A stretch of 64,000 nt of DNA from Anthoceros angustus (Eukaryota; Plantae; Anthocerotophyta), in contig VJWM01000209.1 of NCBI GenBank assembly GCA_010909165.1, forward strand, positions 1 through 64,000, written 5' to 3'. This document shows, in pieces, positions 19,221 through 47,438 of this stretch. The position numbers and the translations under genes are program-made. The notes under the pieces are model-generated. The model worked only from the letters and a program-made list of their open reading frames with translations. It was not told where the DNA came from and did not search any database. Position 1 is the first letter of the stretch. Each line of letters begins with the position of its first letter.

Positions 19221-19380
19221 ACCCTTACGCTCTCTTGGCTTGGCATCTCCGGAGAGGATAACTCCTGCGTTCCTCCCACATCTCATGTCGATGCTCACTC
19301 GAGCCATGGCAATCATGGCGCCTGTCATCCTCGTCCCTCTTGCCACCACTCCTATTCATCCTTAGAGGAATTCGCAACAT

Positions 19381-23029: not shown

Positions 23030-24160
23030 TCCTCGAAATGCAAGAGACATGCTTCCATGTTTTCCTGTGAAGACATCGTTCTTACTTGGTGTGAACTCAA
23101 GCTCCATTCTTGCAGACTCTCCGCTCCAATCAGCTGTCTCCTTGTATGGGCGTTGTCTCTGTTCGGTGTCCTCTTGAATGGCGAGTAGTAGGCGTCGTGC
23201 ACTTCTCCGTGAAAGGCGCGGTGTCCTTTCGTCGATCCACCACGATCTCGGGAACACCATCAATGGTTACTTCTCCTATGCGACCCTTTGCGGATGTTGT
23301 CAAAGGCAAATTGTTCCACCGTTAGCCCAACTAGCGAAAAGTACATCCACGCCTCTATCCACAAGCGGCTCCACGTATGCGGGCTCTTCTCCGATTAACT
23401 AACTCAGCAATCGTGAGACTACCACACCTAAGCATGTATAATCAATGGCGAAATTCACATCCCGAAAAACATCGCCTATCTCTTAGTTGCCTTCGCAACA
23501 CTCAACCTTCTCGGATCGCGGTGTCTCACAGGTTGGATGGTGGGCGACTTCCGCCTCTTCCTCCAATCTCCGGTAGCGCCCCAGTCTCCTCGAAATGCAA
23601 GAGACATGCTTCCATGTTTTCTGTGAAGACATCGTTCTTACTTGGTGTGAACTCAAGCTCCATTCTTGCAGACTCTCCGCCCAATCGAACTGTCTCCGGA
23701 TCGGGCGCGTTGTCTCGTATTGTTCGGTGTCCTCTTGAATGGCGAGTAGTAGACGCCGTGCACTTCTCCGTGAAGACGCGCAGTGTCCTTTTCGTCACCC
23801 ACCACGATCTCGTGAACACCATCAATGGTTACTTCTCCTATGCACCACCGCATTTGGATGTTGTGGCAAATTGTTCCACCGTTAGCCCAACCAGCTAGCC
23901 AGAAAAGTACATCCACTGCCTCTATCCACAAACGGCTCCAGACGTATGCAGGCTCTTCTCCAGACAGTTCTGCTAACTCAGCAATCGTGAGACTACCACA
24001 CCTAAGCTGTATAATCAATGGCAGAATTCCTGTCCATTAGAAAAACATCAGCCTATCTCTTAGTGCTGCCTTCTGCAACACCCAACCTTCTCGGATCGCA
24101 GCTGTCTCCTGGGTTGGATGGTGGACGACTTTCGCCTCTTCCTCCAATCTCCAGCACGCC
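23030..24160. repeat. Internal tandem duplication in the gag 5' region (~560 bp x2)
   Basis: TCCTCGAAATGCAAGAGACATGC occurs at ~23030 and ~23587. Confidence 0.85.
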
Positions 24161-25557: not shown

Positions 25558-26974
25558 CCCTTAGCTCGGGAGGTTGCTGTATCTTGGTTTGGGTCTTCAT
25601 CTTCAAGGTTGAAGAAATCTGCAGTAATAGGATCTTCATTCACAGTCGAAGTGCCCTCAACTGTAAAGCTCCAAATATCAATAGACCCTGGAGTGCCACA
25701 AAATTTTTGGTTTGTGCCCAAGAAGAAGTCCATCTGCTCAAAAAAGGGCCAAGAGCCTGGTGTCCCCTTGATACATGCTTTACCTTTTCTCCTTCATCGT
25801 ATTTCTTCTTCAGCGCCTCTACTTTACCTTTTGCATAACGTCGGTCCAAGTACAGTATGGTGAAACCAGGCTGCAAATTTCATGCGAATGCTTCACCTCC
25901 AAATTGCCATTGTTCACTTTGAAATATTTCTCTTCAACATCAAAATTAGTTTTTGGGTGCCTTCATCTGTTCAAGTCGTCTTCTCCAAACCAACCTGCTG
26001 GCTGCATTATTCCACATGACCGTGGGAAAAATCTGCGCCGTAATGCAAAAGATCCGCCATGGCTTCCTTTTCAAGGCTAGCTAGGGCGCAACGTGACTTG
26101 GTATGGCTTTGTGAATCTCAATGTGTATTATTTAATACAATACATAACATCTTGGGGCGACCAATATGCACCCGGGATGAAGCACGAGTGAGGGCAATGT
26201 ATGCCGTAAACACTTCGACTATGAGGTCTACCCGTAGTCGTAGTGGGGAATACTATATAAAGGCACAACATCTTTTTATAAACTAGCTAGGCTGGTCAAT
26301 CTACGCAGTGAAAAGGGCAAAACGAACAGCAGCTTGGTTATTCTATGTGAATAGGCCATCAGTTTCGCAGTTACAAGCAAACCACTTCACGATCACATTT
26401 ACTTCCTGATTAAGTATATTTCCTGCTGGTCCTAATTAAGTATAGTGAATGAATCACCACCGTTTGTGAATAAAGTTGAACTTCAAGTTTCTTTAGGCTC
26501 TGTCTCCTAAGGCTCTATCTCTTTAGGCTGTGTTAAAGAAACATTTGTGAATGGTGTTTCAAAAAACTAGACAATATCGTTGAAGTAAACACGTAGTGTG
26601 GTTTTTTTAATACAAAATATGCTCAAATAAACCAAATAATATGGTGGAAAAACATGTATATTTTATTTTCGAAAACACATATTTTTGAAGAAACATGGAT
26701 TGGGATTTATGAAATTTAAAAGACAGCTTGAAGACATACTTGAACAAACATACATTATGTTGTAAAAACATGTATAGTGTTTGAGGAAACAAGCATTGTG
26801 TTTCAAAAACCATAAAAGAATTGCTTGAAGAAACATTATAGTTAGAAGAAATATTACATTTTTCAAGTCTTGCCATTGTGCAATGTAAAATTGATGTTGG
26901 GTATAGGCATGTAAATCCTCTATGTCACTGCAAAAGAAAGGACTGAAGATTCAAGCTAGGATGCTTGAACGTGG

Positions 26975-27190
26975 CTTACCGTGCTGAATTGGTGCCATTA
27001 ATTTCAACTTAAATGAAGGAGAAGGCATAGCAATCTCAGCACACTTAGCACAACCTGGATGAAGGAATTACACCAACTACTTGTTGTACTTGCACCTGGT
27101 GCAAGTGCTAAGACTCCAGCTCAATCCATTTTCGTTGTCATCTCCATTCAAGTGTGTGACCACGCAGGAATTGGCGCGCACAAAGCTGAT
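26975..27190 (-). pseudogene. Possible relic exon with an RPA70-C-like C4 zinc ribbon (copy 2 at ~46640-46850)
   Basis: The minus frame reads WSLSTCTRCKYNK*LV*FLHPGCAKCAEIAMPSPSFKLKLM, which is Cx2Cx13Cx2C with two stops, followed by a GTAAG donor. Confidence 0.3.
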
Positions 27191-27476
27191 AACGGGCTTA
27201 TCACGGGCCCGGGAAGTAGAGCATTTAAATATGATTTACGAAACAGGAACACCAAAAGTGAAGCATGGATAAATGAAAACCGTTTTGGTTTTAAAACCGC
27301 ACGCGACACAGGTACAGTATTCACATGGATGCGAGTCTTCATCGTACATGCCACATGCACGGACATGGAGGCAACGACCGTATACGGACCGCATACGGGA
27401 TGGAGGTGCACAGGCTGCCCGGATGGTCGGGCCAATCTGCTTTTAAAGAATTCCTTGCAGCGCTGCTACTGGGGGG

Positions 27477-27600
27477 AGGGACTGCAGCTGCCTCTGCGTG
27501 CTTGAAATGCATTCCAGTCATTGAAAGTATCGCAGGGGCAGTCACGGACGTGGTATTGGTTGTGGGGATTGGAGTGGCGCTTGCAGCTACGAGAGGATGA
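27477..27600 (+). pseudogene. Relic 5' fragment of an older P450 paralog (copy 2 at ~47148-47271)
   Basis: TGCAGCTGCCTCTGC...ACG GAC GTG GTA TTG GTT GTG GGG ATT GGA GTG GCG CTT GCA (TDVVLVVGIGVALA) parallels 27706-27811 (MEVTLGVEIGVALA). Confidence 0.75.
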
Positions 27601-27770
27601 GCTGGTCGCACGCCTCAACTTGCCTTCACACTTCACAGCATTGATGCTGAGCATTGTGTGACCTCCACAGCTCATGAAGCTGAGCATTGTGTGAAGTGGG
27701 AGGGAGTGCAGCTGCCTCTGCCTCTGCATTCTTGAGTTGAATGCCGTTGTTGAAATAATCGGAGGCAGCC

Positions 27771-30006
27771 ATGGAAGTGACATTGGGTGTGGAGATTGGA
27801 GTGGCGCTTGCAATTGCGGTGCTAGCTGTGGCCTGGCCAGTGTGGAGGTACTGGGAGCGGAGGGGATGTGGGCGCCCAAGGGCTCAAGCAGCTGCCGGGG
27901 ACCATGGGCTTCCCCTGCTGGGAGAGACGATGGAGCTGCTGGGCTACTTCAAGGTCGGGGATCCGGAGACATTCACGGCCAAGCGCTTTCGCAAGTATGG
28001 CGATGTGTTCAAGTCGCACCGTGTTAGGAGTCCGTATGTGTTTTCACGGGCGCCGAGGCGGCCAAGCTCTTGCTCTCAATGGAGCACAAGCTGGTACAGG
28101 CGCACCAGTTCCTCCCGCGAGGCAGTTGGTGGGCAAGGAGTCGCTCCTCAATGTGCACGGCCCCACGCACAAGTTCTATCGCAAAATTCTCAACGAATCC
28201 TTCATGGGCGAAGGCATTAGGAAGTATCTGCCGGTGTCGGAGCAATCGGCTCTAGAGACCCTCAGTTCCTGGAAACTGGGCGACGTCCCCGTCATGAGAC
28301 ACGACATGGCCAAGGTGCGTGCACCAGGAATGGGCCACTCTTACCGTTTGTCTGCAATCTAATTGCAATGTTTGTGCAGAGCTCGTGATGTTTGCTAACT
28401 GGTAGTTGCTGACGGTGCGCAGTTCGCTTATCATGTGATCGCGGGACTGGTGCTGAGCTGGGGTCCTGGTTCAGTGCGTGACAGGAGCTTGGAGCTCACC
28501 GAAACAGTGAGTACCAGCTTGATCACGGTGCCCATCAATCTTCCTGGATTCGCCTTTCACAAGGCCATGCAGGTGGAATTCATTCAGGCCCAATTTGGAG
28601 CACAGGTGTCCAATTTCTCCCAGGGCTTGCAATGGGCAATAAATCTAACAGTGCAAGTGGACTGGGCGTGCAGGCAAGAAAGGAGCTGGGTAAAATGTTC
28701 GACACCGAATTTGCGCTGAGAAGGAGCGGAAAATTTGTTCGCAGCGACCTGCTGAACGAAATGATGAAGGCAGTCGACCCCGATTCTTCAAGCGACAAGC
28801 CTGCCCTGGACGACGAGCAGCTGAGGGACAATGTGCTCACCATGATCGTTGCTGGCTTTGAGACCACCACCAACACACTCACCTGGCTTGCCAAGCTGCT
28901 GCATGAGAATCCCAGCGTCAAGGAGAAGCTGCTGGTGAGCCTGGCCCTGGGGATATATCAAGACGTCGTCCATAGGAATCGAAATTGGTTTGGAACAGCT
29001 TGGATCCAAGCGAGCCCACCTTGTTGTTTGGTTTTCTGTCTGTTTAACTGTAGGCTGAGCATTTGGCTCTGAGAAGAAACAAACAAGCTGGAGAGGCACT
29101 GACATGGGCGGATCTCGGCCAACCGATGGCCTACACCTTGAAAGTGAGACTCGAATCCCTCAACATCCTCCAACCTAGTAGTAGCCCAATACTCACTGGA
29201 ATCTGGCGTAAGCTAAGATCCATCTGTCTTGTCTCCTGTGTGCATGCAGGTGATCAACGAGGCACTCCGAGTGTCTTCTATCGCTTTCTGGTTGCATCGA
29301 CAGGTCAAGGAGGACTTTACATTCAACGGTATGTATGCTGCACCTGGCATTGGCAACCGTAAATATTCCTTCCCTACTCCAAGCGGGGAGTCCTAACATG
29401 GGTCCTTTCTCGCTACCTGACACGCATGTGCCACCTGCAGGATACCACATTCCTAAAGGCTGGAACTTTGTGCTCGACACTCAAAACTTGCACCATAGTC
29501 CAGACATCTTCCAAGACCCAGAGATCTTCAATCCCTCTCGCTTCGATGTAAGAGCCTGATGCTTGAATTCAACACTAGAATCATTACAGACGTCCGAATC
29601 ATAGACAACGAACAACATCTTGGGAGTTATCTTGTGACACTGCGTTCTGATGCTACCAACAGGTGCCACCGAAGCCCTTCACCCTGCTGCCGTGGGAGGT
29701 GGAAGCAGATTGTGCCTTGGGAAGGAGCTGGCACTAATGAACATGAAAGTGATGTTGCATCACATGATGCTTAAATTCAGGTGAGTCCCCATAATTCTTC
29801 TGCAATAGCTCACAAGTCATTTACAGTGCCCCTCTCTACATGTACTTCTTTGCTAACCGATGGGTGCCGACCCGTGTTGAAACAGGTGGACAGTAGACAA
29901 GCCAGACACTGGCCTAGTCGTTTCAGGTCTGCCATACCCCAAAACCGGTGTCCCCATACGCATCGAGGCTGTCCAGGACTACTCGTCTGCCAACCGAGCT
30001 ATGTAA
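27771..30006 (+). CDS. Cytochrome P450, CYP85 clan (CYP707/716/720-like), 8 exons, copy 1
   Basis: N-terminal anchor; LPGTMGFPLLGET; KYGDVFKSH; I-helix AGFETT; K-helix EALR; FNPSRF; heme motif W(G)GGSRLCLG. GT-AG exons: 27771-28314, 28423-28572, 28674-28934, 29054-29143, 29250-29328, 29441-29547, 29663-29780, 29886-30006. The 1-bp frameshifts fall mostly in homopolymers. Confidence 0.93.
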
Positions 30007-30542
30007 TACATCAGAGCTTGGCGTAAACCTTGGGATAAAGTGATCCTGCCGTCGAAGGTTATGGGTCCGACAAGGTCTCCAACTGTAGTGCTTCAATATT
30101 TTATCCAGTGGGTTTTAGTAAAAGGTGAGGTAGGACGTCTGGGACTATGGATCTTTCTGACAGTCCATTCCAGTTTTAGCAAAGGTGAGGTACGGACGTC
30201 TGCGTCCTCTGGCAGTCCCATTGCTGTCGCACGTTTCGACGGCACTGTATTCAGAAAAGTTGGAGATTCTTTGAGAAAAAGCTGCAGCATCTGCTTGCGA
30301 CTTGACAAGTTCATACTTCATACTGGAGTCAGCAATGTGCGAAAGCAGGAGGGATTGCTGCAGCATGGCATTCTTGAAATTGCATTCCGTCCTTCAAAGA
30401 ATCGCAGGGCAGCCATGGACGTGACGAGGGGCCTAACACGCGTATGATCAATCCTGCGTGGCGAGGAGATGACCAATTTGCTAATGTATCTGAAATATCT
30501 CCATGTATCTCAAATACGTGCAGAGATCCAGCCGCGTGCTAC

Positions 30543-32142
30543 GCTTAGCCGTAGAAATCAGGTGGCCAGGTGCGGGGCCCGCTGACATTGGTGTACTTCA
30601 TGGTCATGTCTCGCACATTGCCATTAACATCCATGACGTAGAGATCGTCTATACGGTCCAGCAATTCACCGGCCACCGGCCGGGGTCCTTGTCCGAGGCA
30701 TTTTTGTCTTTTGGTTTGTATATGATTACACTTGTCTAGCATGAAGTCATCGCAGATGCTTTGGTTTAGTGGTCGGATCAGCCCCCTGCACCGAAGCGAT
30801 CCCGGTCTTAATCCGTCTAGTCTGCATTTTGTGTGTCGGACACCCTTATGTCTAGTTTGCATTTTGTGTGTCGGACACCCTATGTCTGGACGCGATAACC
30901 CTTGTTGGGTTTGGCGTCACCAGGTTGCCCTTGTTGGGTCCCTTGTTGGTTGTTGCCCTTGTTGGGTCCCTTGTTGGGTTTGGCGTCACCCGGGTTGCCC
31001 TTGTTGGGTCTGGCGTGACCCGGGTTGCCCGCGGCATACAGAGGTATATACATATGAATGCATACAGAGGTATATACATATTCATATGGCAGATTGAGAG
31101 GGTATGGACTACATGGTCCTGGGTTGCCGGTGGCATACAGAGGTATATACATATGAATGCATATAGAGGTATATACATATTCTGCCATAGGACCGATGCA
31201 AAGCCGAGAGGCATGAGGCCGGCATGCGGGCATGCCTCTCTTTCTTTCCGGCGTCTCCCTTTCCGGCAACGGGGCGTCCGTCGTCGCTCCTCTCAACGGC
31301 TCCTTCCACCCTCCTCTCAACGGCTCCCGTCCGCGCTCCTTTCAACGCCGTCCAACGCCGTCCTTCCGCACCTGCTCACTCGTATGTGGTCCCAACTTGT
31401 TCCCACATCCCCTATTCTCGTTCCTAATGCGCTCCAAAACGAACGTTTCAAGTATCATAACCCACTTCTAATGCGGCTCAGTTCAGAGGGAAGCTTGACG
31501 GGTACGATCGAGCAAGCAAGCGGTAGTCTCTCCAATATCGTGATGTCAGCGGAATGGAACATTTGCCTCACACTCACTCAAGTGCAGACACCGGAGCCCG
31601 GCATCTTCACCAAGGAGCCTCACACTCAAGTGCAGACACCGGAGCCCGGCATCTTCACCAAGGAGCATTTGTCATGGGCTGTGGGCGATCATCGAGGGAA
31701 GATCAAAATGCACATGAATGTGAAGCGCGCTTACATTCCTTCTGACCGTGTAGGTGATTTTATTGCAGGTGAGAAAACATAATCTATTACAGTATGTTCA
31801 AAATGAACAGGACAGTGGGAGTTCGTGATCGAGTGCTTGGTGAAGAGGTTGAGACCCGAGACAGTTGAGACCCGAGACGGGTGACCATGAGAGGAGCGCG
31901 GACGGAGCCGTTAAGAGGAGCGACGACGGATGCCCCGTTGCCGGAAAGGGAGACGCCAGAAAGAAAGAGAGGCATGCCCGCATGTCGGCCTCATGCCTCT
32001 CGGCTTTGCATCGGGGTGCGTGGCCACACGGGCGATACGAATGGCAGGGCTCATTAAGTTTGCGTAAGCCTTAGGCGACGGGGGTCATGCACGAGGGAGT
32101 CAGCGGGCCCCGCACCTGGCCACCTGATTTTCACGTCTAGCC
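30543..32142 (+). mobile_element. Non-autonomous Mutator-like element (MULE): 44-bp TIRs, 9-bp TSD GCGTGCTAC
   Basis: Perfect 32-bp inverted repeat at 30555-30586 and 32099-32130, plus 12 imperfect outer bases on each side. GCGTGCTAC flanks it at 30534-30542 and 32143-32151. Confidence 0.85.
31543..31782 (+). pseudogene. N-terminal fragment of a MULE/SWIM zinc-finger protein (At4g13970/At1g60560-like); copy 2 at 51193-51429
   Basis: MSAEWNICLTL..VQTPEPGIFTKEHLSW...AYIPSDRVGDFIAGE resembles my recollection of the family N-terminus (W..I.SLPVQNP...F...DL.W...ALIPY.RVDDF..GE). It contains an internal 45-bp duplication. Confidence 0.65.
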
Positions 32143-32931
32143 GCGTGCTACTGTCTCTGAAATATATGCGGAGCTCGAGCCGCGTGCCAACGTGTTCTAG
32201 ACTCTGAAATTATGTGCCGAGCTCCAACCGCGTGCCGAAGAATTTGACATATGTGCGGAGGTACAGCCGCGTGGGCCGGGTCTCTTATTATTTAAACCCG
32301 CACAGTTCCTGCAGATGCTCGTATAAATGTGAGGCCCGCAAATCTGAGGCCCGCTTTTTACTGACCGGCGGTTGCGTCCCATGTATGAAATTCACCAGCC
32401 TGCTTGTCTGCTGCCTCGCGTCGCTAGCCCCGGCGAACATCGCATGTTTCGAGGGGTGAGGCCTGTCAGTCTTGGGCTGGTCAGGCGTCGTCTCTCGTCA
32501 GCCTCTCGACGCTCTGACATGCCTGGTAATGCCACTGGAGGCCACAAGTTTTTGCGACCCCCGGTGGATGTAAAACCAAAATCACGAGTCTGTCCAATGC
32601 CCATCACCCACGCATACACCGGCGGTCGAATGTGACAAAAGTTTTCAACTACGATTCGGCCAGGGTCACTTTGACTTGTCGTACGAAAAAGCGTTTCATG
32701 ACATCACGAGGACGTAAAAGCGTCCAGTGTCAGTGAAGTGCAGCTTGCGTGCATGTAATACAGAATTCTGTGTGTAAGGTAACGTACAAGTGAAGCTTGC
32801 ATGCCTTGTAGACTTTGGGCCATAATATTATAGAAGTCATAGAATACCCCGTCCCTTAGGCTATAATGCCCCGCCGTTTAATCATTCCGGCGAAGTCAGT
32901 TGTGTTGCCCAAGTGCTCACGGTCATCAGGA

Positions 32932-35900
32932 ATGGCTGCAGCGACTGTCACAAGAGCAGCAGCTGCAGCTGCTTCTCCGACCAGCTCAAGGTGGTGTCCG
33001 CAACGCCAACGCGGAGTGGCCAAGATACTCGGGGGGAGCATCGATATCGTCCAGTCGATCAAGAGAAGTAGAGGATGCAAGGCTTCCAAGGCGGCACATG
33101 TCGAGGCTTGGCAGGTGCATGCGTCCGCTGCGCATGGGCTTGGGCCGCTGCAAGCTCAGGCCACAGATTTACAAGCTGCAGAGCGCGAAGTGGAGGTGCT
33201 GGAGCGGCTGTGCTTCCGGATGATCGATATGATCCGGATGCAGATGCGGATGCGGAGATCCAGGAGTCGATCCGAAGCATCCAGAGTATGCTGCGGTCAC
33301 TCGGGGACAGGGCCATCTCCGGAGCCCTACGACGCGGCCTGGGTGGCCATGGTGCCGGCGGCGGGCGGCGTCCGGGGCCGCACTTCCCGAGGCGCTGGAG
33401 TGGGTGGTGCGTTCGCAGCTGCCGGAAGGCTGCTGGGCGGGCGACGCGCACCTCTTTAACGTCTACGATCGCCTGGTGGCGACTCTGGCGTGCGTGGTAG
33501 CGCTGCGAACATGGAGCGTGCATCCCGATGCCGTGCGGAAAGGGTGCGCCTTCATCCGGCAGCATATGCACCACGTGGATTCCGAGAACCACATCCACAG
33601 AACCGTGGGGTTCGAGATGGTGTTCCCGGCTATGCTGGAGCGGGCGAGCGCGCTGGAGCTGGATCTGCCGTACGACGCGCCCGCAACCAGCACCCTTCTG
33701 CGGGAGCGGGAGCGCAAGCTGAAGCAGATTCCGGTGGAGTTGGTGCAGTCGCAGCCCACGACGCTGCTGGCGTCGCTGGAAGGGATGGACGCCCTGAAGG
33801 GCTTCGACTGGGACAAGATCCGGAGGCTGCAGTCGCCGGCGGGCCACATGCTCACCTCTCCGGCCTCCACCGCCTGCTTGTACATGCACACCGGGGACAG
33901 CAAGGCGCTGCAGTACCTCACCCTGCTGGTGGAGACGACGGGGTGTTATCCCCAACCACTCGCCTGTCGACATCTTCGAGCGGCTGTGGATCGTGGACAG
34001 GCTGCAGCGTCTGGGTATCGCGCGCTACTTCAAGCCCGAGATCAAGGACATCCTGGACTTCGCCTTCCAGCGGTGGACGGAACGGGGCCTGAGCTGGGCC
34101 ACCGATTGCAATGTCACCGACCTGGACGACACCAGCATGGGCTTTCGCTTGCTGCGCCAGCATGGCTATCCTGTCTCTGCAGGTGCCCTCTGTACACTCA
34201 CGCATGTATCTTGGCATCCTTGGGCTTGCTCCCGCTTATCACACTTGTGGTGACTGTGTCTGTCTACTACTCATGTGATGCAGATGTGTTCAAGGCATTC
34301 TGCAAGGAGACCACTTCTCGTGCTGGGTCGACCACGGGTGCGACCTGGACACCGATGTCACCCCATGTTCAATCTGCACCGCGCGTCCGAGATGCGCTTC
34401 CCACACGAGGACTTGCTGGACAAGGCCTGGGAGTACACGCGCTTTCATCTGGGAGAAACAGCGACAGCCGCAGCTGTCGGACAGGTGGGTTGTGTCCAAA
34501 GATCTCCGAGGAGAGCTGGAGTACGCTTTGAGCTGCCCTGGTACGCCAGTATGCCTCGCTTTGAGACCAGGGCTTATATCGACCACTACGGCCCTGGCGA
34601 CGTGTGGATCGCCAAGAGCCTCTACAGGTGAGTACCTTCCGTCTCACATCGCTTTCACGCATTGGCGAGCTCCTGACAGCTGAGAAATCAATTGGGCATC
34701 CATGTAACTGCATCCATCTCTTTCCAAATTGTACAGGATGTATGGCGTCTGCAATTCAACATTCCTATCCCTTGCAAAAGCAGACTTCAACAAATTGCAA
34801 ACCATGTACCGCGCGGAGCTGGAGGCATTGAAGGAGTACGTGCAGTTCAAGTTTCCCATCATCCGATCCTCACTAATAGCCACAATGTCTGAAGAGGAAA
34901 GACTTAAGCTTGCCTATTAACTTCGCTTCCAATTCGCTCTGTGCACCGGTAGATGGGTATCAGAATGTCGCTTCGACCGTCTCCCATTTGCTCGCCACGA
35001 CAGGGTGATTCCAGGCTTCCGTGCGCGGCTGCCACCTCCTTCGAACCGGAGATGGCTGCGGTGCGCAGAGCCAGGACCCAACTCATGCTCCTGGCCACCA
35101 TACTCGACGATTACACCACCCTGTCAGGAGTTCCCCAGGACGAGCTCGACCGGTTCCAGGCTGCCACCAAAGGTACCGTTGCTAGCCGGTCATCCACTCG
35201 TAGCCATGCCACTGTCACTCGCCGACCGGACCGGCTGTCCTTCTCACTGCCTGCAATTGCTTGCTTCAACACATCTGTGTCCTTCTGCAGCTGGGACCCG
35301 TCCATGATCGACCACACCAACCACAGGCAGCGCATCGTTTTCATGGGCATCTTCGACACCATCGTCGAGATAGCCGACAAAGCATCCAAGGAGCAGGGCC
35401 GCGATGTCAGCAGGCATGTAATCGCATCGGTGAGTGACTTCTCTCTGGGGCTCTACTGTCCGCATCCCTAACAGCCTAGTGCATCCTCACTTGCTTGTTC
35501 AAGCATTGGCTCACCTACCCCCACGCGCAGTGGCAACGCTACGCCGAATGCGTGAGCATCCGAGCCAAGTGGAAGCGGAAGACATCATTCCCACCTGGAA
35601 CCAATTCATCCCAGTCGGCGCAATCTGCATCAGCGCGGAGCTCTGCAGTTTGGGACCTGGCTTCTTGATACCCGGTGTGGGGGTGAGCGAAGAGGCCATC
35701 AACTCGGAATACTACGACCTCCACATGAAGGTCTCAATTGTAGCGCGCCTCTTGAACGACCTCAGATCGTACCAGGTACGCTAATATGTAGTCAAGGTGA
35801 GGTTGCACATGTCTGATACATCACACAGCATACATGCATATGACCCGTCCCATGTCCAATCCTGGAATTGCCACAGAAGGGGATATCGGAAGTGAACAGT

Positions 35901-36157
35901 ATGGTTGTTCATATGAGAGAGTACCCGGAGAAGAGCGAGGAGGAAGCGGACCACGACATCCGAGCTATAGTGGAATCAACATGATACAGCTGGTGCAACA
36001 TGTCTTCACTCCATCGGCTGTGCCCACACCTGCAAACTCGTCTTTTGCACAATGCCATTGTCGCATATTACCTCTACGCAGACAACGACGGCTGGTCCTC
36101 CCCTCAGCCAAGATGCAGCACCACTTTAACCAGCTTCTTTTCAACCGTGTGATTTGA
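32932..36157 (+). CDS. Diterpene synthase (gamma-beta-alpha, class II DxDD active site, plastid transit peptide), 7 exons, copy 1
   Basis: Ala/Ser/Arg-rich transit peptide; SPYDAAWVA; QLPEGCW; DRLVATLACVVAL; VGFEMVFP; SLEG; SPASTA; VDRLQRLGI; DLDDTSMGFRLLR; DVWIAKSLYRM; RLLND. Introns at ~34183-34283, 34628-34737, 34835-34952, 35172-35290, 35430-35530 and 35776-35876. An upstream in-frame ATG exists at 32866. Confidence 0.95.
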
Positions 36158-36199
36158 TGTACTTCAGCCACCTCTATCAACTTCACTGCAGAAGTCGTT

Positions 36200-38580
36200 A
36201 CCACAAGTAGTAACCTAAGAAACCTGTGTACATTTTGGAAATCTCACAGTTCAGCAAGTGTGTGCGTGCAAACCCTTTCCTGCCAACCTCTTTTTCTGCA
36301 GACGGAACCATATTCCATGTGTAGCGTCCCACGCTACCTGCCCTGTACACCTGCACAAGTTCCTCCGCCACACGTGGCAAGCCACCATGTACCGACTCAG
36401 CGAGGATTTTCAACAGGCCTGACAAGGCCTGCATTTGCTCGTCCACCAAGCCTTCCATCTCCTGCATATCATAGAGGTTCCCTTGGAATGACCGATTTTT
36501 GCAGCCAGGGTGTGCCGGACATCTGGTACCCTGTCAGGCACAGCCTGCGAGTAATATATGTCACAAAAGTTTATCTGCAGTCGGGAACCATATCCCATGT
36601 GTAGCGTCCCAAGGTACCTGCTCTGTACACCTGCACAAGCTCCTGCGCCACACGTGGCGAGCCACCATGTACCAACGCAGCGAGCATTTTCAACAGGCCT
36701 GACAAGGCTTCATTTGGTTCCCGTTGAATGACCGATATGTTGCAGCCAGGGTGTGCCGGACATCTGATACCCTGTCAGGCACAGACTTCGAGTATATATA
36801 TGACACAATGTTATAATAGGGGAATGCACAAAAGTTTCCATCTCCCCCACACCTCATACCTCTGGACCATTAGGTTGCTCAGCATTACCATGCAGCTTCC
36901 AGCTCGAGTAGACATCACGCGCATTATTCAGTAACGAGGCAGTACCTTGCAATCCGCTCATCTCCTACCACGGACTCTTTTGTGGCTCCTGAAGAGCAGG
37001 CAGCAACATCAGCCAACAGAGTTTCAAGTGTTTCTAACAAAAGCACCGGGCCTGTAGGTGGTGGGGAGACTGTACCAGTCAATGACAGCTTCAACCTTGT
37101 CTCAACATCACGGATCTATTGTACCAGCAATCCAGGTGTGTCAAGCGCATAGATGCTTGGATGTCTACCAACTTGGCACGACGCATGTTACCCACCTATG
37201 TCAATTGCCAGCAGGCAAAGGCTATCACCACTCGCCTCAGGCTGGAAGATGATGACATATATCAAGTGCTGGTAAGGACATATCCCAGACCTGGGAGCCT
37301 GATCTGTTTCGGTGACTCCAGGCAGAGGTCCAAGTTTGCTTTTTCAAATGCTCCTGCAGTAGACAAAAGCTACGATCTCAGATAGACAAGGCTTGGCCTC
37401 CAAAGGCTCAATGACTCTCCTGATGCTATATGACTCTCATGTGCAACAAACAGCGCTAGCAACAAACAGTACCTGGAAACCCCGATCTTGTGAGCTGACC
37501 CATCTTGTTCAGAATAGCTGACTTGCGCACGCCCTGGCGACATCAGCAGCAAGGTGGGCTCTTTCACTGGCTCTCTTTCAGCCAATCCCTTGCTTTCACG
37601 CATCAGCGCCTGAAAGCTGAGAAATCAACAATCCATGTGACTGCATCCATCAAGGGTCCACCAAGCTTTCCATCTCCTGCAGGTCATCCAGGTTCCCATT
37701 GAATGACCGATATGTTGCAGCCAGGGTGTGCCGTACATCCGAGACCCTGCCAGGCACAGCCAGCGAGCATGACATATATCAAGTGCTGGTAAGGACATAT
37801 CCCAGACCTGGGAGCCTGATCTGTTTCGGGTGACTCCAGGCAGAGGTCCAAGTTTGCTTTTTTCAAATGCTCCTGCGGTAGACAAAAGCTACGATCTCAG
37901 ATAGACAAGGCTTGGCCTCCAAAGGCTCCAATGACTCTCCTGATGCTATATGACTCTCATGTGCAACAAACAGCGCTAGCAGCAAACAGTACCTGGAAAC
38001 CCCGATCTTGTGAGCTGACCCATCTTGTTCAGAATAGCTGACTTGCGCACGCCCTGGCGACATCAGCAGCAAGGTGGGCTCTTTCACTGGCCTCTTTCAG
38101 CCAATCCCTTGCTTTCACGCATCAGCGCCTGAAAGCTGAGAAATCAACAATCCATGTGACTGCATCCATCAAGGGTCCACCAAGCTTCCATCTCCTGCAG
38201 GTCATCCAGGTTCCCATTGAATGACCGATATGTTGCAGCCAGGGTGTGCCGTACATCCGAGACCCTGCCAGGCACAGCCAGCGAGCATGACATAATATTA
38301 GAGGAACAAGACTGAACGAAAGTTTCCATCTCCCCACACCAACTTGGAGAAGGCTTCATACCTTTGGACCGTCAGGTTGCTCAGCGTTCCCATCCAGCTT
38401 CCACCTTGAGTAAACATGGCGCGTATTGAGAAGCGAGAGCAAGTACCTCGCAATCCGCTCTTCTCCTACAACCGAGTCTTCTATGGTTCCTGAGGATTAA
38501 GCAGCAACATCAGCCAAATAGAGTTTCATATGGTTCTAACGATGACACCAGTCCTGTAGGTGGAGGGGAGGCTGCAATAC
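36200..38580 (-). pseudogene. Fragmented, internally repeated gene relic of unrecognised family (copy 2 at ~55820-57660)
   Basis: The peptide VPDRVxDVRHTLAA..FNGNLxDxQEME recurs at ~36500, 36740, 37720 and 38240. ETLLADVAA..ES.VG.ERIARY recurs at ~36950-37030 and ~38440-38520. Confidence 0.4.
37252..38293. repeat. ~518-bp tandem duplication present only in copy 1
   Basis: ATGACATA occurs at 37252, 37769 and 38287. There is a single unit in copy 2 (56861-57385). Confidence 0.9.
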
Positions 38581-38769
38581 CAGTCAACTACCATCTTTAG
38601 GGTGGAACACTAATCTTACCTGGCCCAAACAGGCAATGGCTAGCCAAGACCCTTATTAGGGCCTGCGGAGAGAGAGGCACATGTCTTCAGAGCTTCGTCA
38701 GGATAAGAACTTTGGGGGTTTCGAACCGACGCTGTAGAACATGGTTCCCATGGCCAGGCACAAAGCAAT

Positions 38770-39560
38770 TCATTGCAAGACGTAGCCAGTAGTAACCTAC
38801 GTCTCTGGACATGTTGATGAAGGACCTTCGAGTGAGGGTAAAACACTGCATCAGGGTGCTGGCTTCGCTTCCTGTCGACTCTTGCAAGGAGCGGGAATCT
38901 GCCATGGTGGACAAGGTATACCAGCATCCACAAAATGCTGATTCAACACGCGTACGGGACATCCAGTCACCACATGGAAATGACAGGAGCACGCATTCAA
39001 ATCGCGACGCCTGCTCCACCAATCTGATTATCCTCTACACGGCACCAACGTAGATCGTCCTGCAGAACTAGGTCGTTGAACAGCTCAAAGACTTCGCTGC
39101 TGGGCTGGTGAATAGAAGTGATGACAGTCCGTCCATCTGGAGCCAAATTCTTCAAGGTAGTCGTAACAAAGAAGGCTGCAGCACTGCAACAAGCCCACCT
39201 TCCATTTTAGCACTGAATGAGGAGTAGAAGCAACAAAAAAATAACTCCGAATGTGCACCATCCCCGCACACCTATCCAAGTCACTGATAGGCTCATCCAG
39301 ATGCAAAAAGCGAGGCTTGGTAAGCAGCTCCAAGGCAATGGTGACCCATCTCCTCTCACCTCCGCTCACCCCTCTGAGATGTTAATTCTCTATGGGCGTG
39401 TGCAAAGCTTACTGAAGACCCATTCCTCGATCGTGGTGTTAATGATCTCCATCTTCTGTGCCCTGGGCATCCTGACCGGAAGCCGGAAGAAAGCCGAGTA
39501 CACCATAGTCTCAAATACGGTGAGCGTCCCGGGCAAGTTGTCATTCTGCGTCACATAGGC
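38770..39560 (-). pseudogene. ABCG half-transporter (ABCG11/WBC-like) fragment, copy 1
   Basis: AYVTQNDNLPGTLTVFET; SGGERRWVTIALELLTKPRFLHLDEP; intron; [36 protein letters not shown]; [20 protein letters not shown]. Walker A and most of the TMD are not seen. Confidence 0.88.
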
Positions 39561-40049
39561 CTACAATCACAGCAGCGATGAGCTCCCGAAGTGACAGTAA
39601 CTGTCCCAGTCCCAGCCCCAAAACTCATTCCCACTTACCGCCACGCCGCACGACAGCCACTACTTGCTGCCATTGAGATAAATGTGCCCCGGGCGTCTGC
39701 CTCGCATTCTTGGCCAACCTCCTGCCCAAACGACATTAGATCCATCACACCGGTCACTTCCTGTGACGCGTTGTGCGAGATCAAGCCCTTCCCCAAGGAC
39801 TCAACAAAACTGTCACGTCCCACATGCCTGCCAGAGTGTCGAGAAGGGTTGATTTGCCGGAGCCAGAAGGCCCCATGATGTAGCACGTCATTCCTTATTT
39901 AGGCTTTCGTCTGTGACGCCTTCGTGTGATGATGGCATTGTACTTCTCGGTGTGGTGATGCCCGTCTGTGCTTCTTGGTGTGATCCTCCCCAAACGTCAA
40001 ACATTTTGAATCTGGTAATCGTCATCTCTCCAGGGAATCGAGACTTGTG

Positions 40050-40750
40050 ATGGTGATCCCAATTGCAACCGGAGGGGATCCGGAGTGTCACAGTGTGTGT
40101 GAGAGCAGCAGAGCCTCCGCGAAATTTGGCAGCCTTGAAACGGGTCTGCGCGATGTGGTAACCACCATGGTGGTTCCCGCCGGAGATCCAGAGAAGAAAT
40201 CGCACGAGAACGAAAGGTGTGAGATCCGTAGCCTGGATCAGCTCATCCCCAACGTGTACGTGCCCCTTCTCCTGCTGTTCGATAAAACCCCGAGATCGGG
40301 ATTGGCGGGACTGGTGGAGGAGCTCAAACAGTCGCTGGCTAGGGTGCTGGTGCTCTTCTATCCCATGGCGGGCAGGGTGGTGGAGAGGGCGGGCCAGCCG
40401 CCGCATCTGGTGTGCAACAATGCCGGTGCCGTCTTCACCTCCGCGCACGTGGACGCTCCCATGAGCCAAGTGTGTGGAGTCGGCATTCACTTCCAGCCGG
40501 TGCCACAAATCCAAGGGACATTGATGAGGCACAAAGTTGAGATTGCAGAGGCGGAGGTGGAGGTGGGAAGCAAGCCCTTGTGGTTCATGTAAGCCTCAGC
40601 CTCTGAGTGTTGTGCAAATGGAAATCTTCCATGGGTGCTGTGGAATTCAGGTGGCGGGGCTGCGGCATATGCATGCAGGTGACGGATTTGAGTGTGGAAT
40701 TCAGGTAGCGTGGCCCTGGCTGTCAGCTGGCTGCATGCCAGAGCATGGCA
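40050..40750 (+). pseudogene. BAHD acyltransferase, N-terminal half, truncated by a Copia LTR, copy 1
   Basis: SLDQL..VYVPLLLLF; LKQSLARVLVLFYPMAGR; LVCNNAGAVF; intron at the Q^VT position; FECG..VALAVSWLH. It breaks at the HxxxD motif, where the LTR starts. Confidence 0.88.
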
Positions 40751-43680
40751 TGACACGGAAGCGTAAAGAGGAAAGGCAGAAAAACAATTGAGAGTGAAAC
40801 AACCACGTCGAGGAGAACATATAAAAGTAGTTATAAAACCCAATCTAGGATACCTACTCATATGTCAGTAACCTAAGTAATAACTAAAAGTATTGTTCAA
40901 ACGTGCCCTAAGTAGGGCTCTAACTTGCACAATCTCAACACTCCCACTCACGTTTGGAACAACGTGAAATGAGACTAACAAGCTAACATGTCCAGTTCAC
41001 TCTTGATAAGAACATAAATGTATAGCAAGTTAACATATGATGAAGAAAAGCTCCCACTTATGAAGAACCACTTGATAAATCCACAAGGCCTAAAGCGGAA
41101 GAGAAATACTCATGCTTGGCCTTAGATAAACCTTTAGTAAATATATCGGCGAGGTTCTCCTCCGTGGGAACATACTCAATGGCGAGGTTCTCCTCCGTGG
41201 GAACATACTCAATAGCCACGTGATGCTTCGCAACTAATTGTCTTATAAAATGATGATGAACACCAATATGCTTAGTTCGAGCATGGTACTTGGCATTCTT
41301 AGTTAACGCTATTGCCGACATATTGTCACAATACAATAAAGTTGGTGAGCCTTGAACTTGATCCATCTCCGCTAATAAGGATCTTCCAGCTATAGCTTCC
41401 TTACCAGCTAGTGTCAAGGAAGCATACTCACTCTCAATTGAGCTGTCACAATACAATAAAGTTGGTGAGCCTTGAACTTGATCCATCTCCGCTAATAAGG
41501 ATCTTCCAGCTACAGCTTCCTTACCAGCTAGTGTCAAGGAAGCATACTCACTCTCAATTGAGCTAAGAGACACACTCTGTTGCTTCTTACATGTCCATGA
41601 AACAGCAGCACTACACATGGTGAAACAATAGCTAGATAAGCTTTTCCTTGTAACAGGATCAGCTGCCCAGTTGGCATCAGACCAACCCTGAAGTAGCAAC
41701 CTTCTTGTTCCAGATCTCTTGTACTGAAGCCCAACATACATAGTTCCATATAGGAAGCGATAGATGCGTTTTACCCAACCCAATGTGCTAAACCAGGATT
41801 AGAAAGGAATTGCGACACAATGGAAACAGCATGTGTGATGTCTGGACGAGTCCAACCACTAAGGAAAAGTAAACATCCTCGCTTCCTATAAGGTGTATGA
41901 AGCATCCTCTCATTCCTCGGTTGTAGTAAATCTTGAGTAGATAGGGTTTGCCCAATTTGCAAGTGGAGTGGCTGCGGGACATCTTTCTGCTTGAAGTGAT
42001 TAAGAAGCTCTTTAACATACTTAGATTGATAAATGCTAAGTGTACCTTCTTCCCTATTCCAGAAAACAATCGAACTCCAAGGCAATAAGTAAGAGTTCCA
42101 ATATCCTTCATCTTGTACTTGGAACTAAGAGTTGCCTTAACTTCTGATAAGAGGTCTTGGCTATTCGTAGCAATTATTATGTCATCCACATATAAAGCAA
42201 TAATAACAAGCTTCCCATCCTTGCGTAGGAAATATACATTCTCATCAGAATCTGACAAAGCCAATCTCTACAAGAGTGCCATCTATATCGACATACCACT
42301 TCAAAGGAGATTGTTTGAGTCAGTAAATACATTCAAAGTCGCAACTAAGTCTCTAGTTTTAGGATCTACAAACCCTTGGGTTGCTCCATATAAATAAGCT
42401 CCTCTAATTTACCATATAGAAAAGCAAAGGTAACATCCATTTGTTGTAGATCTAAATCTAACTCATTGCTAATGCTAACAAGTATCTAATTGTCTCCAAC
42501 TTAACAAGCGTGAAAAGGTCTCATGATAATCTACTCCGGGAACTTGACTATATCCCTTAGCACACAAACGTGCCTTGTAACGTTCTACACTACCATCAGC
42601 TTTCAATTTGATACGAAATACCCACTTACATTGAATTGGTTTCCTACCATAAGGGAGCTTAACTAATTCCCAAGTATTATTCTCTATCAAACTATTATAT
42701 TCGGATAATATAGCTGCCTCCCACTTCTCCTTATCCGGTCCAGATAATGCCTCTTCACGTGTAGCAGGTTCAATAAGATTAGTAGCTGCTATGTAGGCTT
42801 GGACTAATGAGGCAGAGGCAGGAGTTAATGAGTTCACATCTAAATTGGGTTCATTTCTCAAATTAGATAAAGGGGCAGCTAAAGAATTATTATTTTGGGT
42901 GTTGGAAATGGTTGGTGCAGAAACGGGCGCTGAAACAGGATCTACGGATGAGACTTGGGCAGATTCTATGTGCAAAGAGGCATCGGTGGTCACGGGATCA
43001 GATGTGTGCCAAGATGCGGCCTGGACATCCTCCCAGATGCTCTTGCGCACCTCGGTGATACGGCTCAAGCCAGGCTGGAGATCTACGCGTCCTTGTGGAG
43101 CGACGCGCGGCAGGCGCTGCTGGATCGGGAGGAGGCTTGTAGCTGGGGTTGCACTGTGATGGTGCCAGGAGATGTGCAAGGTGAGGCAAGCGCCCTATTG
43201 GATCGGTGACTGCAGCTGATTTTGCTTTCTGGGAGGCCTGCAGGCAGGTTTCTAGACACTGTGGGAGCAAGTGCTGCAGGATATGATGGCTGATTTGGCA
43301 GCTGTAAGGCAGTGCGGTACCTTGTTGGGCGGCCCTTGTCGGGTGTGTGCGGTGCGCTCCCACTGTCCCAGTCCCACTCGGACGTGCTGGTCATCAGCTC
43401 CCACTCATCTGCAAGGTCGAGTCAAAGGAGCAACCTTGCACATGTCTGCTGGTTCGACGATAATGGATGGTGCTCCTCCAATTCTCTCCCTCGGTGGGCA
43501 GAGATTGCTCAATAACAACACTCCTGAATACATGATCCGCGAGTCTCGGGGTTCACCTTGTATCCCTTTATGCCTTGATTATATCCCACAAACAGCATCT
43601 TGTTGGCCTTAGCATCGAGCTTCTGACGAAGTTGTTTGGATATATGAGCATATGCAGTGCTCAAAATCTGAAGATGCGAA
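40751..43680 (-). mobile_element. 5'-truncated Ty1/Copia element (INT C-terminus, RT, RH, PPT, 190-bp 3' LTR at 40751-40940), copy 1
   Basis: KLDAKA..GIKGY; [31 protein letters not shown]; LYVDDII; SDANWA; HARTKHI; ADIFTK. PPT GTGAGTGGGAG is followed by TGTTGAG...GTGTCA. Confidence 0.95.
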
Positions 43681-44009
43681 ATGGGGTTTGAGTCCTAACG
43701 TCTCTCGGCATAGGGTTATTCTCCATTAAAGAGGTTTGGGTCCCTAAAGACCAAAAATGACCCCAGGCCAAAAATGCATCATCTTTAGCAAAACCACTCT
43801 TTAGACATGTCTTTGAAGACATTGACCATGTTATTTTCTCGTGAATACTTACGCTAACAGGTTAAGCGAAGAAGGTTTTGATTTCACCTTCACAAGGAAG
43901 GGATTTCAAGGATTTTAACGGTGCTAGGAATCCTAAACACCTCTTTCGCAGTATAGTACTTCCTAGTAGGGTGAACAGTAGGCAAACCAAACAAAACTAG
44001 TCCAGCAAG

Positions 44010-44390
44010 CCAAACTGCGCCGGACGTCCGGCGCAACCAACATGCAAAAGCAGCAATTCGCAAGCCGAAAAGAAGCAACTACGTCGGACGTCCAGCGCAA
44101 TTGTGATAGAACATTAACCGATAGCTTGATCATGGCCATCTCGAGCAAACTACGACTCTAGAAAGTAGCGCGGGACGTCTGGTGCACTGTGAGTACACAA
44201 CCCAGGGATCTCCATTGTTAGAGTGAAAAACATAGGAAGGAATTGGAGCAATGCGCCGGACGTTCGGCACATTGGTGCGAGTCTGCTAAAGCCTGCGCCG
44301 GACGTCCGGCGCATTTTCTGGAGACCCCAATCTTGCGGGCGTCCAGCGAGATGGAAATGGTGGAGTGGATGCGCCGGACGTCCGGCGCAA
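44010..44390. repeat. Cluster of palindromic CGCCGGACGTCCGGCG motifs (copy 2 at ~62970-63310)
   Basis: About 7 exact or degenerate copies at ~44018, 44085, 44170, 44253, 44296, 44336 and 44371. Confidence 0.8.
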
Positions 44391-44429
44391 ATGTATATAT
44401 ATTGTTTGTATCCCTTCTAAAGCATCCAC

Positions 44430-44830
44430 TCGGGTAAGGGTGGAGATAGACACACTGGTATAAGACGGGTAAGGGTGGAGATAGACACACTGGTATAAGA
44501 ACTCCGAGATTAAGCACCCTCGGGTCGGATCAGTATCAGGATGGGGTGCTTTGACTTTGGTGCTTTGAGAACTCCACGGATACGCACTTCTTGGGTCGGA
44601 TTAGTCCTAGGACGGGTTGCTTGTTTTTGGCATAAGAACTCCAAGGTTAAGCACCCCCGGGTCGGATCAGTACCAGGATGGGGTGCTTGACTTTGGTGCT
44701 TTGAGAACTCCACAGTTAAGCACTCTTGGGTCGGATTAGTACTAGGATGGGTTGCTTGTTTTTGGCGCTTTGAAAACTTTGTAACAACTCCACTGTTAAG
44801 CAACCTAGGCGTATCAATACCGGGATGGAG
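44430..44830. repeat. Tandem repeats: 35 bp x2, then ~68-bp A/B alternating monomers x5 (copy 2 at ~63350-63735)
   Basis: GGGTAAGGGTGGAGATAGACACACTGGTATAAGA occurs twice. GAACTCC..TTAAGCAC..GGGTCGGAT.AGT...AGGA.GG recurs. Confidence 0.85.
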
Positions 44831-47438
44831 TGTTGATTTTAGTGGTTTGAAAATTTGTAAATCATCCGGTATCTAGGCGTAAAGTCATGAATATTATTTT
44901 TGAAAATCATTTGTTGGTTGATGTTATATTCTCACATTAGCTTTTCTTGATGTCACCGTGACGGTGACATCAAAATTTAAGAATATTGACTCTCATCTGC
45001 ATGCGCGTGGGTCGAGAGAGGATGGAAAGGGCTCCAAAGGCGGGGCGGAGGGCGCCATCGCCTCCTCGTCTGGACCTCAATTCTTCATCCTCTCGCGATT
45101 TTCCTCACTTCACAAAATTAGAAAATCCGACATGAAAGCCATACTTCTTATCACAATTGTGCTCATGGGAAGGATCAAAAAATATGGCTCGATACCATAT
45201 CGAGTTGTGTGGATTGTGGGTGAGAGCACGCAGGGAGGCGAGAGTGCACGAGGCCGAGGCGGCGGTAGTTATCGTTATGATCAAAGAAAAAAATAAAAAG
45301 AGTATATATGAGTATTTAGGTATTTAATTAAGTATATAACCTGATTATGAAACTAACCTAAACTAACATAATTTCCTTTAAGCTCGGGAGGTTGCTGTAT
45401 CTTGGTTTGGGTCTTCATCTTCAAGGTTGAAGAAATCTGCAGTAATAGGATCTTCATTCACAGTCGAAGTGCACTCAACTGTAAAGCTCCAAATATCAAC
45501 AGACCCTGGAGTGCCACAAAATTTTTGGTTTGTGCCCAAGAAGAAGTCCATCTGCTCAAAAAAGGGCCAAGAGCACAGTGTCCCCTTGATACATGCTTTT
45601 CTCCTTCATCGATTTCTTCTCTACAGTGCTAATCCAAGTGCATGGTGAAACCAGTGCATTTCTTCTTCACCTCAATTGCCATTGTTCTTTGAAATATTTC
45701 TCTTCATTTGGTCGCCTTCTCCACATGACACGTGGAAAAATCTGCCGTAATGCAAAGATCCGCCATGGCTTCCTTTTCAAGGCTAGCTAGGGCATAGCGT
45801 GACAGTATGGCTTTGTGAATCTCAATGTGTATTATACATAACATCTTGGGGCTAATATGCACCCGGGATGAAGCAGTGAGGGGCAATGTGCAGTAAACAC
45901 TTGACTACGAGGTCTACCGTAGTCGTAGTGGGGAATACTATATAAAGGCACAACATCTTTTTATAAACTAGCTAGGCTGGTCAATCTACGCAGTGAAAAG
46001 GGCAACGAAAGCAAAACGACTTGGTTATTCTATGTGAATAGGCCATCAGTGCATTACAAGCAAACCACTTCACGATCACATTTACTTCCCGATTAAGTAT
46101 ATTTCCTGGTCCTAATTAAGTATAGTGAATGAATCACCGTTTGTGAATAAAGTTGAACTTCAAGTTTCTTTGGGCTCGCTCCTAAGGCTCTATCTCTTTA
46201 GGGCGTTAAAGAAACATTTGTGAATGGTGTTTCAAAAACTAGACAATATCGTTGAAGTAAACACGTAGTGTGGTTTTTAATACAAAATATGCTCAAATAA
46301 ACCAAATAATATGGTGGAAAAACATGTATTTTATTTTCGAACATATATTTTTGAAGAAACATGGATTGGGATTTATGAAATTTAAAAAGACAGCTTGAAG
46401 ACATACTTGAACAAACATACATTATGTTGTAAAAACATGTATAGTGTTTGAGAAACAAGCATTGTGTTTCAAAAACCATAAAAGAATTGCTTGAAGAAAC
46501 ATTATAGTTAGAAGAAATATTACATTTTTCAAGTCTTGCCATTGTGCAATGTAAAATTGATGTTGGGTATAGGCATGTAAATCCTCTATGTCACTGCAAA
46601 GAAAGGACTGAAGATTCAAGCTAGGATGCTTGAACGTGGCTTACCATGAATTGGTGCCATTAATTTCAACAAATGAAGGAGAAGGCATAGCAATCTCAGC
46701 ACACTTAGCACAACCTGGATGAAGGAATTACACCAACTACTTGTTGTACTTGCACCTGGTGAAAGTGCTGAGAACTCAGCTCAATCCATTTTCGTTGTCA
46801 TCTCCATTCAAGTGTGTGACCACGCAGGAATTGGCGCGCACAAAGCTGATAACGGGCTTATCACGGGCCCGGGAAGTAGAGCATTTAAATATGATTTACG
46901 AAACAGGAAACACCAAAAGTGAAGCTTGGATAAATGAAAACCGTTTTGGTTTTAAAACCGCACGCGACACAGGTACAGTATTCACATGGATGCGAGTCTT
47001 CATCGTACATGCCACATGCACGGACATGGAGGCAACGACCGTATACTGACCGCATACGGGATGGAGGTGGGGCCGACGGAGGCTGCCCGGATGGTCGGGC
47101 CAATCTGTTTTTTTTAAAGAATTCCTTGCAGCGCTGCTACTGGGGGGAGGGACTGCAGCTGCCTCTGCGTGCTTGAAATGCATTCCAGTCACTGAAAGTA
47201 TCGCAGGGGCAGCCACGGACGTGGTATTGGTTGTGGGGATTGGAGTGGCGCTTGCAGCTACGAGAGGATGAGCTGGTCGCACGCCTCAACGCCTTCACAC
47301 TTCACAGCATTGGCTGAGCATTGTGTGACCTCCACAGCTCATGAAGCTGAGCATTGTGTGAAGTGGGAGGAGTGCAGCTGCCTCTGCCTCTGCATTCTTG
47401 AGGTTGAATGCCGTTGTTGAAATAATCGGAGGGCAGCC

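Follow-up and report, generated by a model that had tools for sequence, protein, structure and literature searches.

A candidate cytochrome P450-class II diterpene synthase pair in a young tandem array of the hornwort Anthoceros angustus

We analysed 64,000 nt of Anthoceros angustus contig VJWM01000209.1 (hereafter, the window), in which a sequence-only reading had picked out a 13-kb diterpenoid gene cluster at 27771-40750. This region lies within a single unit of a young tandem array. The explanation that fits best overall, to which we assign a probability of about 0.6, is a recently amplified and probably live pair of genes for a cytochrome P450 and a class II diterpene synthase. Gene families were identified by Pfam and Protein Data Bank (PDB) searches of single open reading frame (ORF) or exon pieces. 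All searches used such pieces or stored proteins, so the clan placement and the full-length comparisons given below are piecewise.

Tandem units of the locus

The array and its principal features are as follows.

26011-45092: tandem unit, copy 1 (~19.7 kb), with the P450, a terminal inverted repeat (TIR) element, the diterpene synthase, short repeats, an ABCG fragment, a BAHD fragment and a Copia element (self-BLAST, MAFFT)
45720-64000: tandem unit, copy 2, incomplete because the window ends here (self-BLAST, coordinate map)
27771-30005, plus strand: P450, copy 1 (Pfam, RNA joints, sequence)
47439-49665, plus strand: P450, copy 2 (mapping between copies)
32866-36157, plus strand: diterpene synthase with gamma-beta-alpha architecture, copy 1 (Pfam, PDB, RNA joints)
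52490-55777, plus strand: diterpene synthase, copy 2 (mapping between copies)
34119-34133, plus strand, in copy 1, and 53740 in copy 2: DLDDT, the DxDD class II catalytic acid motif (six-frame motif scan)
30540-32139: non-autonomous TIR element of ~1.6 kb between the P450 and the synthase (repeat search and a joint in run X1)

Self-BLAST of the window aligned 26011-37779 with 45720-57389 at 97.4% identity and 37769-45092 with 56861-64000 at 93.9% identity. The block is therefore duplicated in tandem within the window, and each listed gene is present twice. In a MAFFT alignment, divergence between the two copies is uneven along the unit, ranging from 0.2% to 6.5%. A unit of ~520 bp at 37252-37779 is repeated at 37769-38298, and copy 1 has one of these units more than copy 2.

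The P450 stop codon (30003-30005) and the synthase start (32866) are 2.9 kb apart, with both genes in the same orientation. The TIR element between them has 41-nt terminal inverted repeats at 30546-30586 and 32099-32139, is flanked by a 13-nt direct repeat and is carried by both window copies. We compared 29200-35199 with the contigs of four runs, and in run X1 one DNA contig passes directly from 30529 to 32139, skipping 1609 nt, which corresponds to the empty site of this element. At least one further copy without the element must then exist. An insertion that is present in both window units and absent from at least one other copy also orders the insertion relative to the duplications. When the later insertion is subtracted, the P450 and the synthase are spaced by 1.3 kb.

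The sequence-only reading had placed four gene families in DNA rich in transposable elements (TEs), with the P450 and the synthase co-oriented 2.9 kb apart and a transporter relic head to head with an acyltransferase. These families and this layout stand: Pfam and PDB matches put all four at those places, the spacing and strands are as described, and both the Copia and the TIR elements are present. That reading missed the tandem amplification, the probable origin of most frameshifts in assembly errors, and the sister-copy origin of the RNA.

Transcripts and reading frames

Run X2 is probably RNA, as the index guesses, and derives from the sample that also gave the best-matching DNA run. Its contigs contain GT..AG joints in the P450 (29327>29440, 29547>29660 and 29777>29883) and in the synthase (34177>34279 and 34835>34953), and they do not cover the intergenic stretch 30600-33199. 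Such an empty intergenic stretch is the pattern of real RNA. This organism thus transcribes the P450 and synthase families and splices their transcripts correctly. Spliced contigs of both families come from this one run, as assembled contigs without levels or conditions. We also observed a single 1609-nt RNA contig that links the P450 3' untranslated region (30425) back to 29250. Possible sources of this join are a cycle in the assembly of near-identical units, read-through from one tandem copy into another, or a back-splice.

As assembled, the P450 and the synthase are frameshifted many times in both copies. The letters that X2 carries in addition to the window sit exactly at these frameshifts. 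An extra G at 29693 makes the P450 heme loop read PWGGGSRLCLG, and an extra C is found at 35018. Two extra letters in 33325-33773 fit a C at 33372 and another at 33386 (gap counts). Five more fall in 34279-34583: a G at 34305 and a C at 34360 are tabulated, and the remaining three fit GG at 34451 and C at 34536, which are carried by copy 2 and by an outgroup sequence. This outgroup, L001, is a Logan contig that encodes the protein P0001 and has 79% nucleotide identity to the synthase.

Overall, 302 substitutions and 263 indels separate the copies, of which 11 and 41, respectively, fall in 30000-33999 (MAFFT alignment). When synthase indels were polarised by L001, 17 of 19 were deletions, with nine in copy 1 and eight in copy 2. 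Indels of a single base type lie within runs of at least three in 48% of cases, compared with 15% of background positions. We read synthase exon 1 in the frame of L001, with X at indels, and found no stops in either copy over 349 codons, where copies 1 and 2 differ at just a handful of residues. Against L001, exon 1 has a ratio of non-synonymous to synonymous substitution rates (dN/dS) of 0.28, and identity is 84-87% in exons and 56% in introns. The X1 DNA contigs restore 13 missing letters (net +7 over 33033-33630, GCTT at 34213, G at 34305 and C at 35018).

The published A. angustus assembly was made from Oxford Nanopore 1D reads with wtdbg and polished with Pilon (PMC7027989). Since short reads map ambiguously in near-identical duplicates, this pipeline can be expected to leave indels there. 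We consider it likely that most frameshifts in the two window copies stem from Nanopore assembly error and not from decay, and the P450 and synthase probably encode intact proteins. The earlier suggestion that this core may be alive fits with family RNA contigs that are spliced and in frame, and with the constraint on exon 1. Because the tandem duplicates of this assembly retain indels in large number, what looks like a pseudogene there should be judged with caution.

The synthase, the P450 and a possible pathway

Exon pieces of the synthase match Pfam PF01397, PF03936 and PF19086, with the N-terminal and C-terminal metal-binding domains at 33993-35781. A 175-residue piece of the gamma domain aligns to residues 61-231 of the Arabidopsis copalyl diphosphate synthase (CPS) AtCPS (PDB 3pya; E 2e-45), its best solved-structure match, followed by abietadiene synthase, rice syn-CPS and taxadiene synthase. 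In copy 1, a long exon 1 ends at 34177 and introns at 34178-34278 and 34836-34952 are supported by RNA. In copy 2, most of exon 1 lies in a single frame (ORF 52524-53345).

The DLDD motif is intact in both copies and aligns with the DIDD or DVDD of named CPSs. The position of the class I DDxxD motif is occupied by DDYTT in copy 1 and in L001, and that of the second class I metal motif by NDLRSYQKG, as read over an inferred splice that has no RNA support, so neither position matches its class I consensus. With the N-terminal 316 residues of P0001 as the query, every named relative was a class II enzyme, at 45-50% identity. Among these relatives were ent-, syn- and (+)-CPS, kolavenyl diphosphate synthase, copal-8-ol diphosphate synthase, and proteins of Sphagnum and Marchantia. 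The synthase is most likely a monofunctional class II cyclase, as its motifs indicate. Having lost both class I metal motifs, it probably depends on a class I partner, or on a phosphatase, encoded elsewhere.

Both window copies and L001 have LAS and PNH where named ent-CPSs have LHS and PNV. In every phytohormone ent-CPS, the latter two motifs make up the catalytic-base dyad (PMC11795633). The H263A variant of AtCPS produces ent-LPP, and when Ala replaces this His in AtCPS and other CPSs, the main product is ent-labda-13-en-8-ol diphosphate (PMC11795633). The synthase is therefore like AtCPS in its gamma-beta-alpha architecture, its DxDD motif and its absence of a class I DDxxD, but differs from it in the dyad, and its product is probably not ent-copalyl diphosphate (ent-CPP). 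Angiosperm copal-8-ol (labda-13-en-8-ol) diphosphate synthases, which are ~45-50% identical to P0001, also miss the His of LHS (LFS in two named examples). However, they have Phe where Ala is found here, their second motif differs, and they originated independently in a distant lineage; the likeness in product is inferred only. Taken together, LAS in place of LHS, the Ala mutants of CPSs and the natural copal-8-ol synthases without this His make a water-quenched 8-hydroxy labdane diphosphate our best guess for the product.

The P450 matches Pfam PF00067 on 28632-29069 and 29335-29556. It has an N-terminal membrane anchor, the I-helix motif AGFETT, an ExxR motif (NEALR) and PSRF, and its RNA-supported introns are at ~29328-29439, 29548-29659/62 and 29781-29885. 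A six-frame motif scan found no intact heme loop in the window as assembled; it takes the extra G of the RNA to bring the loop into frame, and the P450 fold, ExxR, PxRF and the Cys heme loop (consensus FxxGxRxCxG) are then all present. The acceptor at 29886 gives the P450 a normal C-terminus (…LKFRWTVDKPDTGLVVSGLPYPKTGVPIRIEAV…), and this true acceptor rules out a premature stop in the last exon. As a separate observation, X1 and X4 contigs (organisms A and B) match from 29695 onwards, and their preceding letters would place LAF ahead of GGGSR, as though both species had a paralogous P450 whose heme loop is the canonical FGGGSR.

The named proteins nearest to the P450 are angiosperm abscisic acid (ABA) 8'-hydroxylases (CYP707A), which belong to the CYP85 clan. 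When candidates were compared with the whole gene by tblastn, CYP707A scored best, with 28-37% identity over the matched gene parts. In P450 nomenclature, membership in a family requires more than 40% identity, so the P450 is not a CYP707A. Placement in the CYP85 clan, as the sequence-only reading had proposed, agrees with these nearest named relatives and is plausible from the sequence comparisons, but it is not proven. The I-helix piece had no protein closer than ~55% in a library of 1.8 billion representatives. Its best PDB match, P450 BM3, was set aside as uninformative on clan, and this piece alone also matches bacterial P450s.

The A. angustus genome paper counted 46 CYP85-clan genes, 'mainly' homologues of ABA 8'-hydroxylase (a KEGG label) and uniquely abundant. 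They are often in tandem arrays, some form a new CYP family, and the expansion was read as an adaptation to desiccation. Its text and supplements do not link the expansion to terpene synthases. The P450 described here resembles this 'ABA 8'-hydroxylase-like' group in its nearest named proteins and in its tandem arrangement. However, it shares just 28-37% identity with CYP707A and adjoins a class II diterpene synthase, which suggests a diterpenoid substrate rather than ABA.

Each unit thus has a gene for an endoplasmic reticulum-type P450 of a lineage-specific family, with CYP707A as its nearest named relatives, and, 2.9 kb downstream, one for a plastid-type gamma-beta-alpha synthase with an intact DxDD and degenerate class I motifs. 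In a model built on these features, the plastid is where the synthase would cyclise geranylgeranyl diphosphate (GGPP), giving a bicyclic diphosphate of labdane type other than ent-CPP. Quenching by water, and hence an 8-hydroxy (LPP-like) compound, is most likely. This diphosphate would then be acted on by a class I enzyme or a phosphatase encoded elsewhere, and the adjoining P450 would oxidise the resulting product. The pair would subsequently have been amplified as a unit, raising its dosage. We regard this complete sequence of steps, from GGPP to the neighbouring P450 and the amplified pair, as possible, at somewhat below an even chance.

More tentatively, and with some doubt, part of the hornwort 'ABA 8'-hydroxylase-like' P450 expansion may belong to diterpenoid metabolism, through a lineage-specific P450 family physically coupled to a class II cyclase, a natural LAS variant, that makes a hydroxylated labdane diphosphate and is amplified with it as a unit. 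If true, hornworts would have a TPS-P450 metabolic gene pair (TPS, terpene synthase), and the published CYP707-like expansion of A. angustus would have an alternative reading. Hornwort diterpenoids are barely studied, and full-text literature searches returned no described hornwort diterpene synthase-P450 cluster. The co-amplified class II cyclase and P450 are two concrete candidate enzymes.

Truncated neighbours, alternative explanations and flanking DNA

Downstream of the synthase, the unit contains the following features.

36160-38640: short repeats between the synthase and the ABCG fragment (self-comparison)
~38640-39900, minus strand, in copy 1, and 57725-58955 in copy 2: ABCG half-transporter relic (Pfam ABC_tran, six-frame pieces, PDB)
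~40150-40750, plus strand, in copy 1, and 59199-59796 in copy 2: BAHD acyltransferase relic (Pfam Transferase, PDB, motif scan)
41058-43179, minus strand: Ty1/Copia internal region (RVT_2), adjoining the truncated BAHD fragment (Pfam)

The ABCG and BAHD fragments are arranged head to head. The ABC_tran piece at 39085-39366 (minus strand; Pfam) had PDB matches exclusively to ABCG1, G25, G2, G16 and G8. The relic retains the nucleotide-binding domain and one further segment, the start of the membrane domain. Where the rest of the six-helix membrane domain of a half-transporter would lie, short repeats run up to the 3' end of the synthase. Among the minus-strand ORFs of 36160-38640, no ABCG membrane domain was recognised by eye. 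The BAHD fragment matches the N-terminus of Pfam Transferase on 40047-40589 (profile positions 13-107 of 434), and its best PDB match was vinorine synthase, with HCT-type enzymes also matched. It retains ~200 N-terminal residues, in two frames, and is followed by the Copia element, whose reverse transcriptase lies at 41788-43176 (Pfam). A complete BAHD enzyme has ~430 residues with HxxxD and DFGWG motifs; the BAHD region has no canonical HxxxD (HxxxDG), and a six-frame scan of the window gave no DFGWG. In Pfam searches, a second BAHD piece and the short ABCG pieces stayed below the threshold. Because both genes are truncated identically in the two units, the truncations predate the last duplication. 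The acyltransferase and transporter arms are decayed, as the sequence-only reading had suspected, with N-terminal parts only in both copies. Its proposed module for making, oxidising, acylating and exporting a scaffold is not supported, given these truncated arms and a synthase without class I metal motifs.

Several observations weigh against a live and functional pair in this window. The RNA contigs differ from both window copies by nine substitutions (six synonymous and three conservative). As these match neither copy, the transcript comes from a sister copy under purifying selection, and it is this sister copy whose expression is shown. X1 has the same letters as the window at three frameshifted homopolymers (G3 at 29693, G4 at 33939, where the relative has G6, and C4 at 34360) and, by gap counts, retains the deletions private to copy 1 at 34451 and 34536. 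Breaks in the last synthase exon are common to both copies. If X1 is accurate short-read data, these three frameshifts are genuine, and copies 1 and 2 are young, true pseudogenes in a decaying array, with only a sister copy, in the array or elsewhere, functional and expressed. We consider this unlikely. The sites that X1 leaves unrestored are all long homopolymers, which the RNA restores where it covers them, whereas X1 does mend deletions outside homopolymers or in short runs. X1 therefore probably under-calls homopolymers, and we rejected it as a decisive independent polish. The absence of nonsense codons and the near absence of amino acid change between the copies over 349 codons also argue against pseudogenes. 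Indels that are about as frequent as substitutions, are nearly all deletions and are evenly split between the copies point to sequencing error rather than neutral decay. An error-prone assembly could also have written one true locus twice from noisy long reads, and the substitution divergence of only ~0.3% in 30000-34000 would suit such an artefact. We find this very improbable, given divergence that reaches 6.5% elsewhere in the unit, the additional 520-bp repeat in one copy, the empty-site form in X1 that implies at least one further copy, and an RNA haplotype distinct from both window copies.

Other points concern the joint function of the two genes. The unit has no class I partner, and a class II-only synthase is not a self-sufficient scaffold step. 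Synteny was sought in a relative from one Logan sample, in which L001 extends just 1.4 kb upstream of the synthase and has no P450 in it, and the P450 contig of the same sample (L002) is a distant paralogue with 66% nucleotide identity that does not overlap L001. With 46 CYP85-clan genes in A. angustus, mostly labelled ABA 8'-hydroxylase and many in tandem, a P450 could stand beside a synthase by chance. It would then derive from the CYP707-like expansion of hornworts and act on another substrate, for example the ABA-like compounds proposed in the genome paper, and a segmental duplication in TE-rich DNA would have carried both genes; the unrelated dead gene fragments in the unit show that the locus collects passengers. 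This is a serious alternative, although we hold it to be somewhat improbable. The genes are co-oriented and were just 1.3 kb apart prior to insertion of the TIR element, both are represented in one RNA library, and such low identity to CYP707A does not imply an ABA function. The complete set of four functions (synthase, P450, BAHD and ABCG) being active has next to no credence from us. All four families do occur within 13 kb, but the BAHD fragment lacks its two motifs, the ABCG fragment lacks a membrane domain, and the same truncations, abutting repeats and the Copia element, are found in both copies. A plant biosynthetic gene cluster is understood as at least three non-homologous functional pathway genes side by side, and here only the P450 and the synthase can be intact. 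Our preferred reading of a recently amplified P450-synthase pair is accordingly that of a candidate two-gene pair and not a four-function cluster, in which co-function is suggested by adjacency and co-amplification only.

TPS-P450 pairs and diterpenoid clusters are known from other plants, such as those for momilactone and phytocassane in rice and for momilactone in the moss Calohypnum plumiforme. The locus described here shares with them a diterpene synthase beside a co-oriented P450, a TE-rich region and local duplication. In contrast to them, it has two live gene types only, its class II synthase has no class I partner, and the whole pair, known here from sequence, is amplified as a 19.7-kb tandem unit in a hornwort. 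In X4 and X8, from the much-sequenced organism B, we found exon pieces of the P450 and the synthase that are at least 95% identical to the window, with diverged introns (29245-29764 and 33611-34844). Orthologues of both genes thus exist in a close relative.

The gap between the synthase and the ABCG fragment is filled by tandem and dispersed short repeats, with units of ~520 bp and ~150 bp (37252-38298 and 36291-37082). Upstream of the array, the ten longest ORFs of 1-26000 had no Pfam match. This part includes large tandem repeats at 16762-24152, with units of ~1.0-1.25 kb at 87-95% identity, a strongly negative GC skew (~-0.2) and long ORFs without a Pfam match. Within the Copia coding region, a 121-nt stretch is duplicated in tandem at 41324-41564 with 99% identity.

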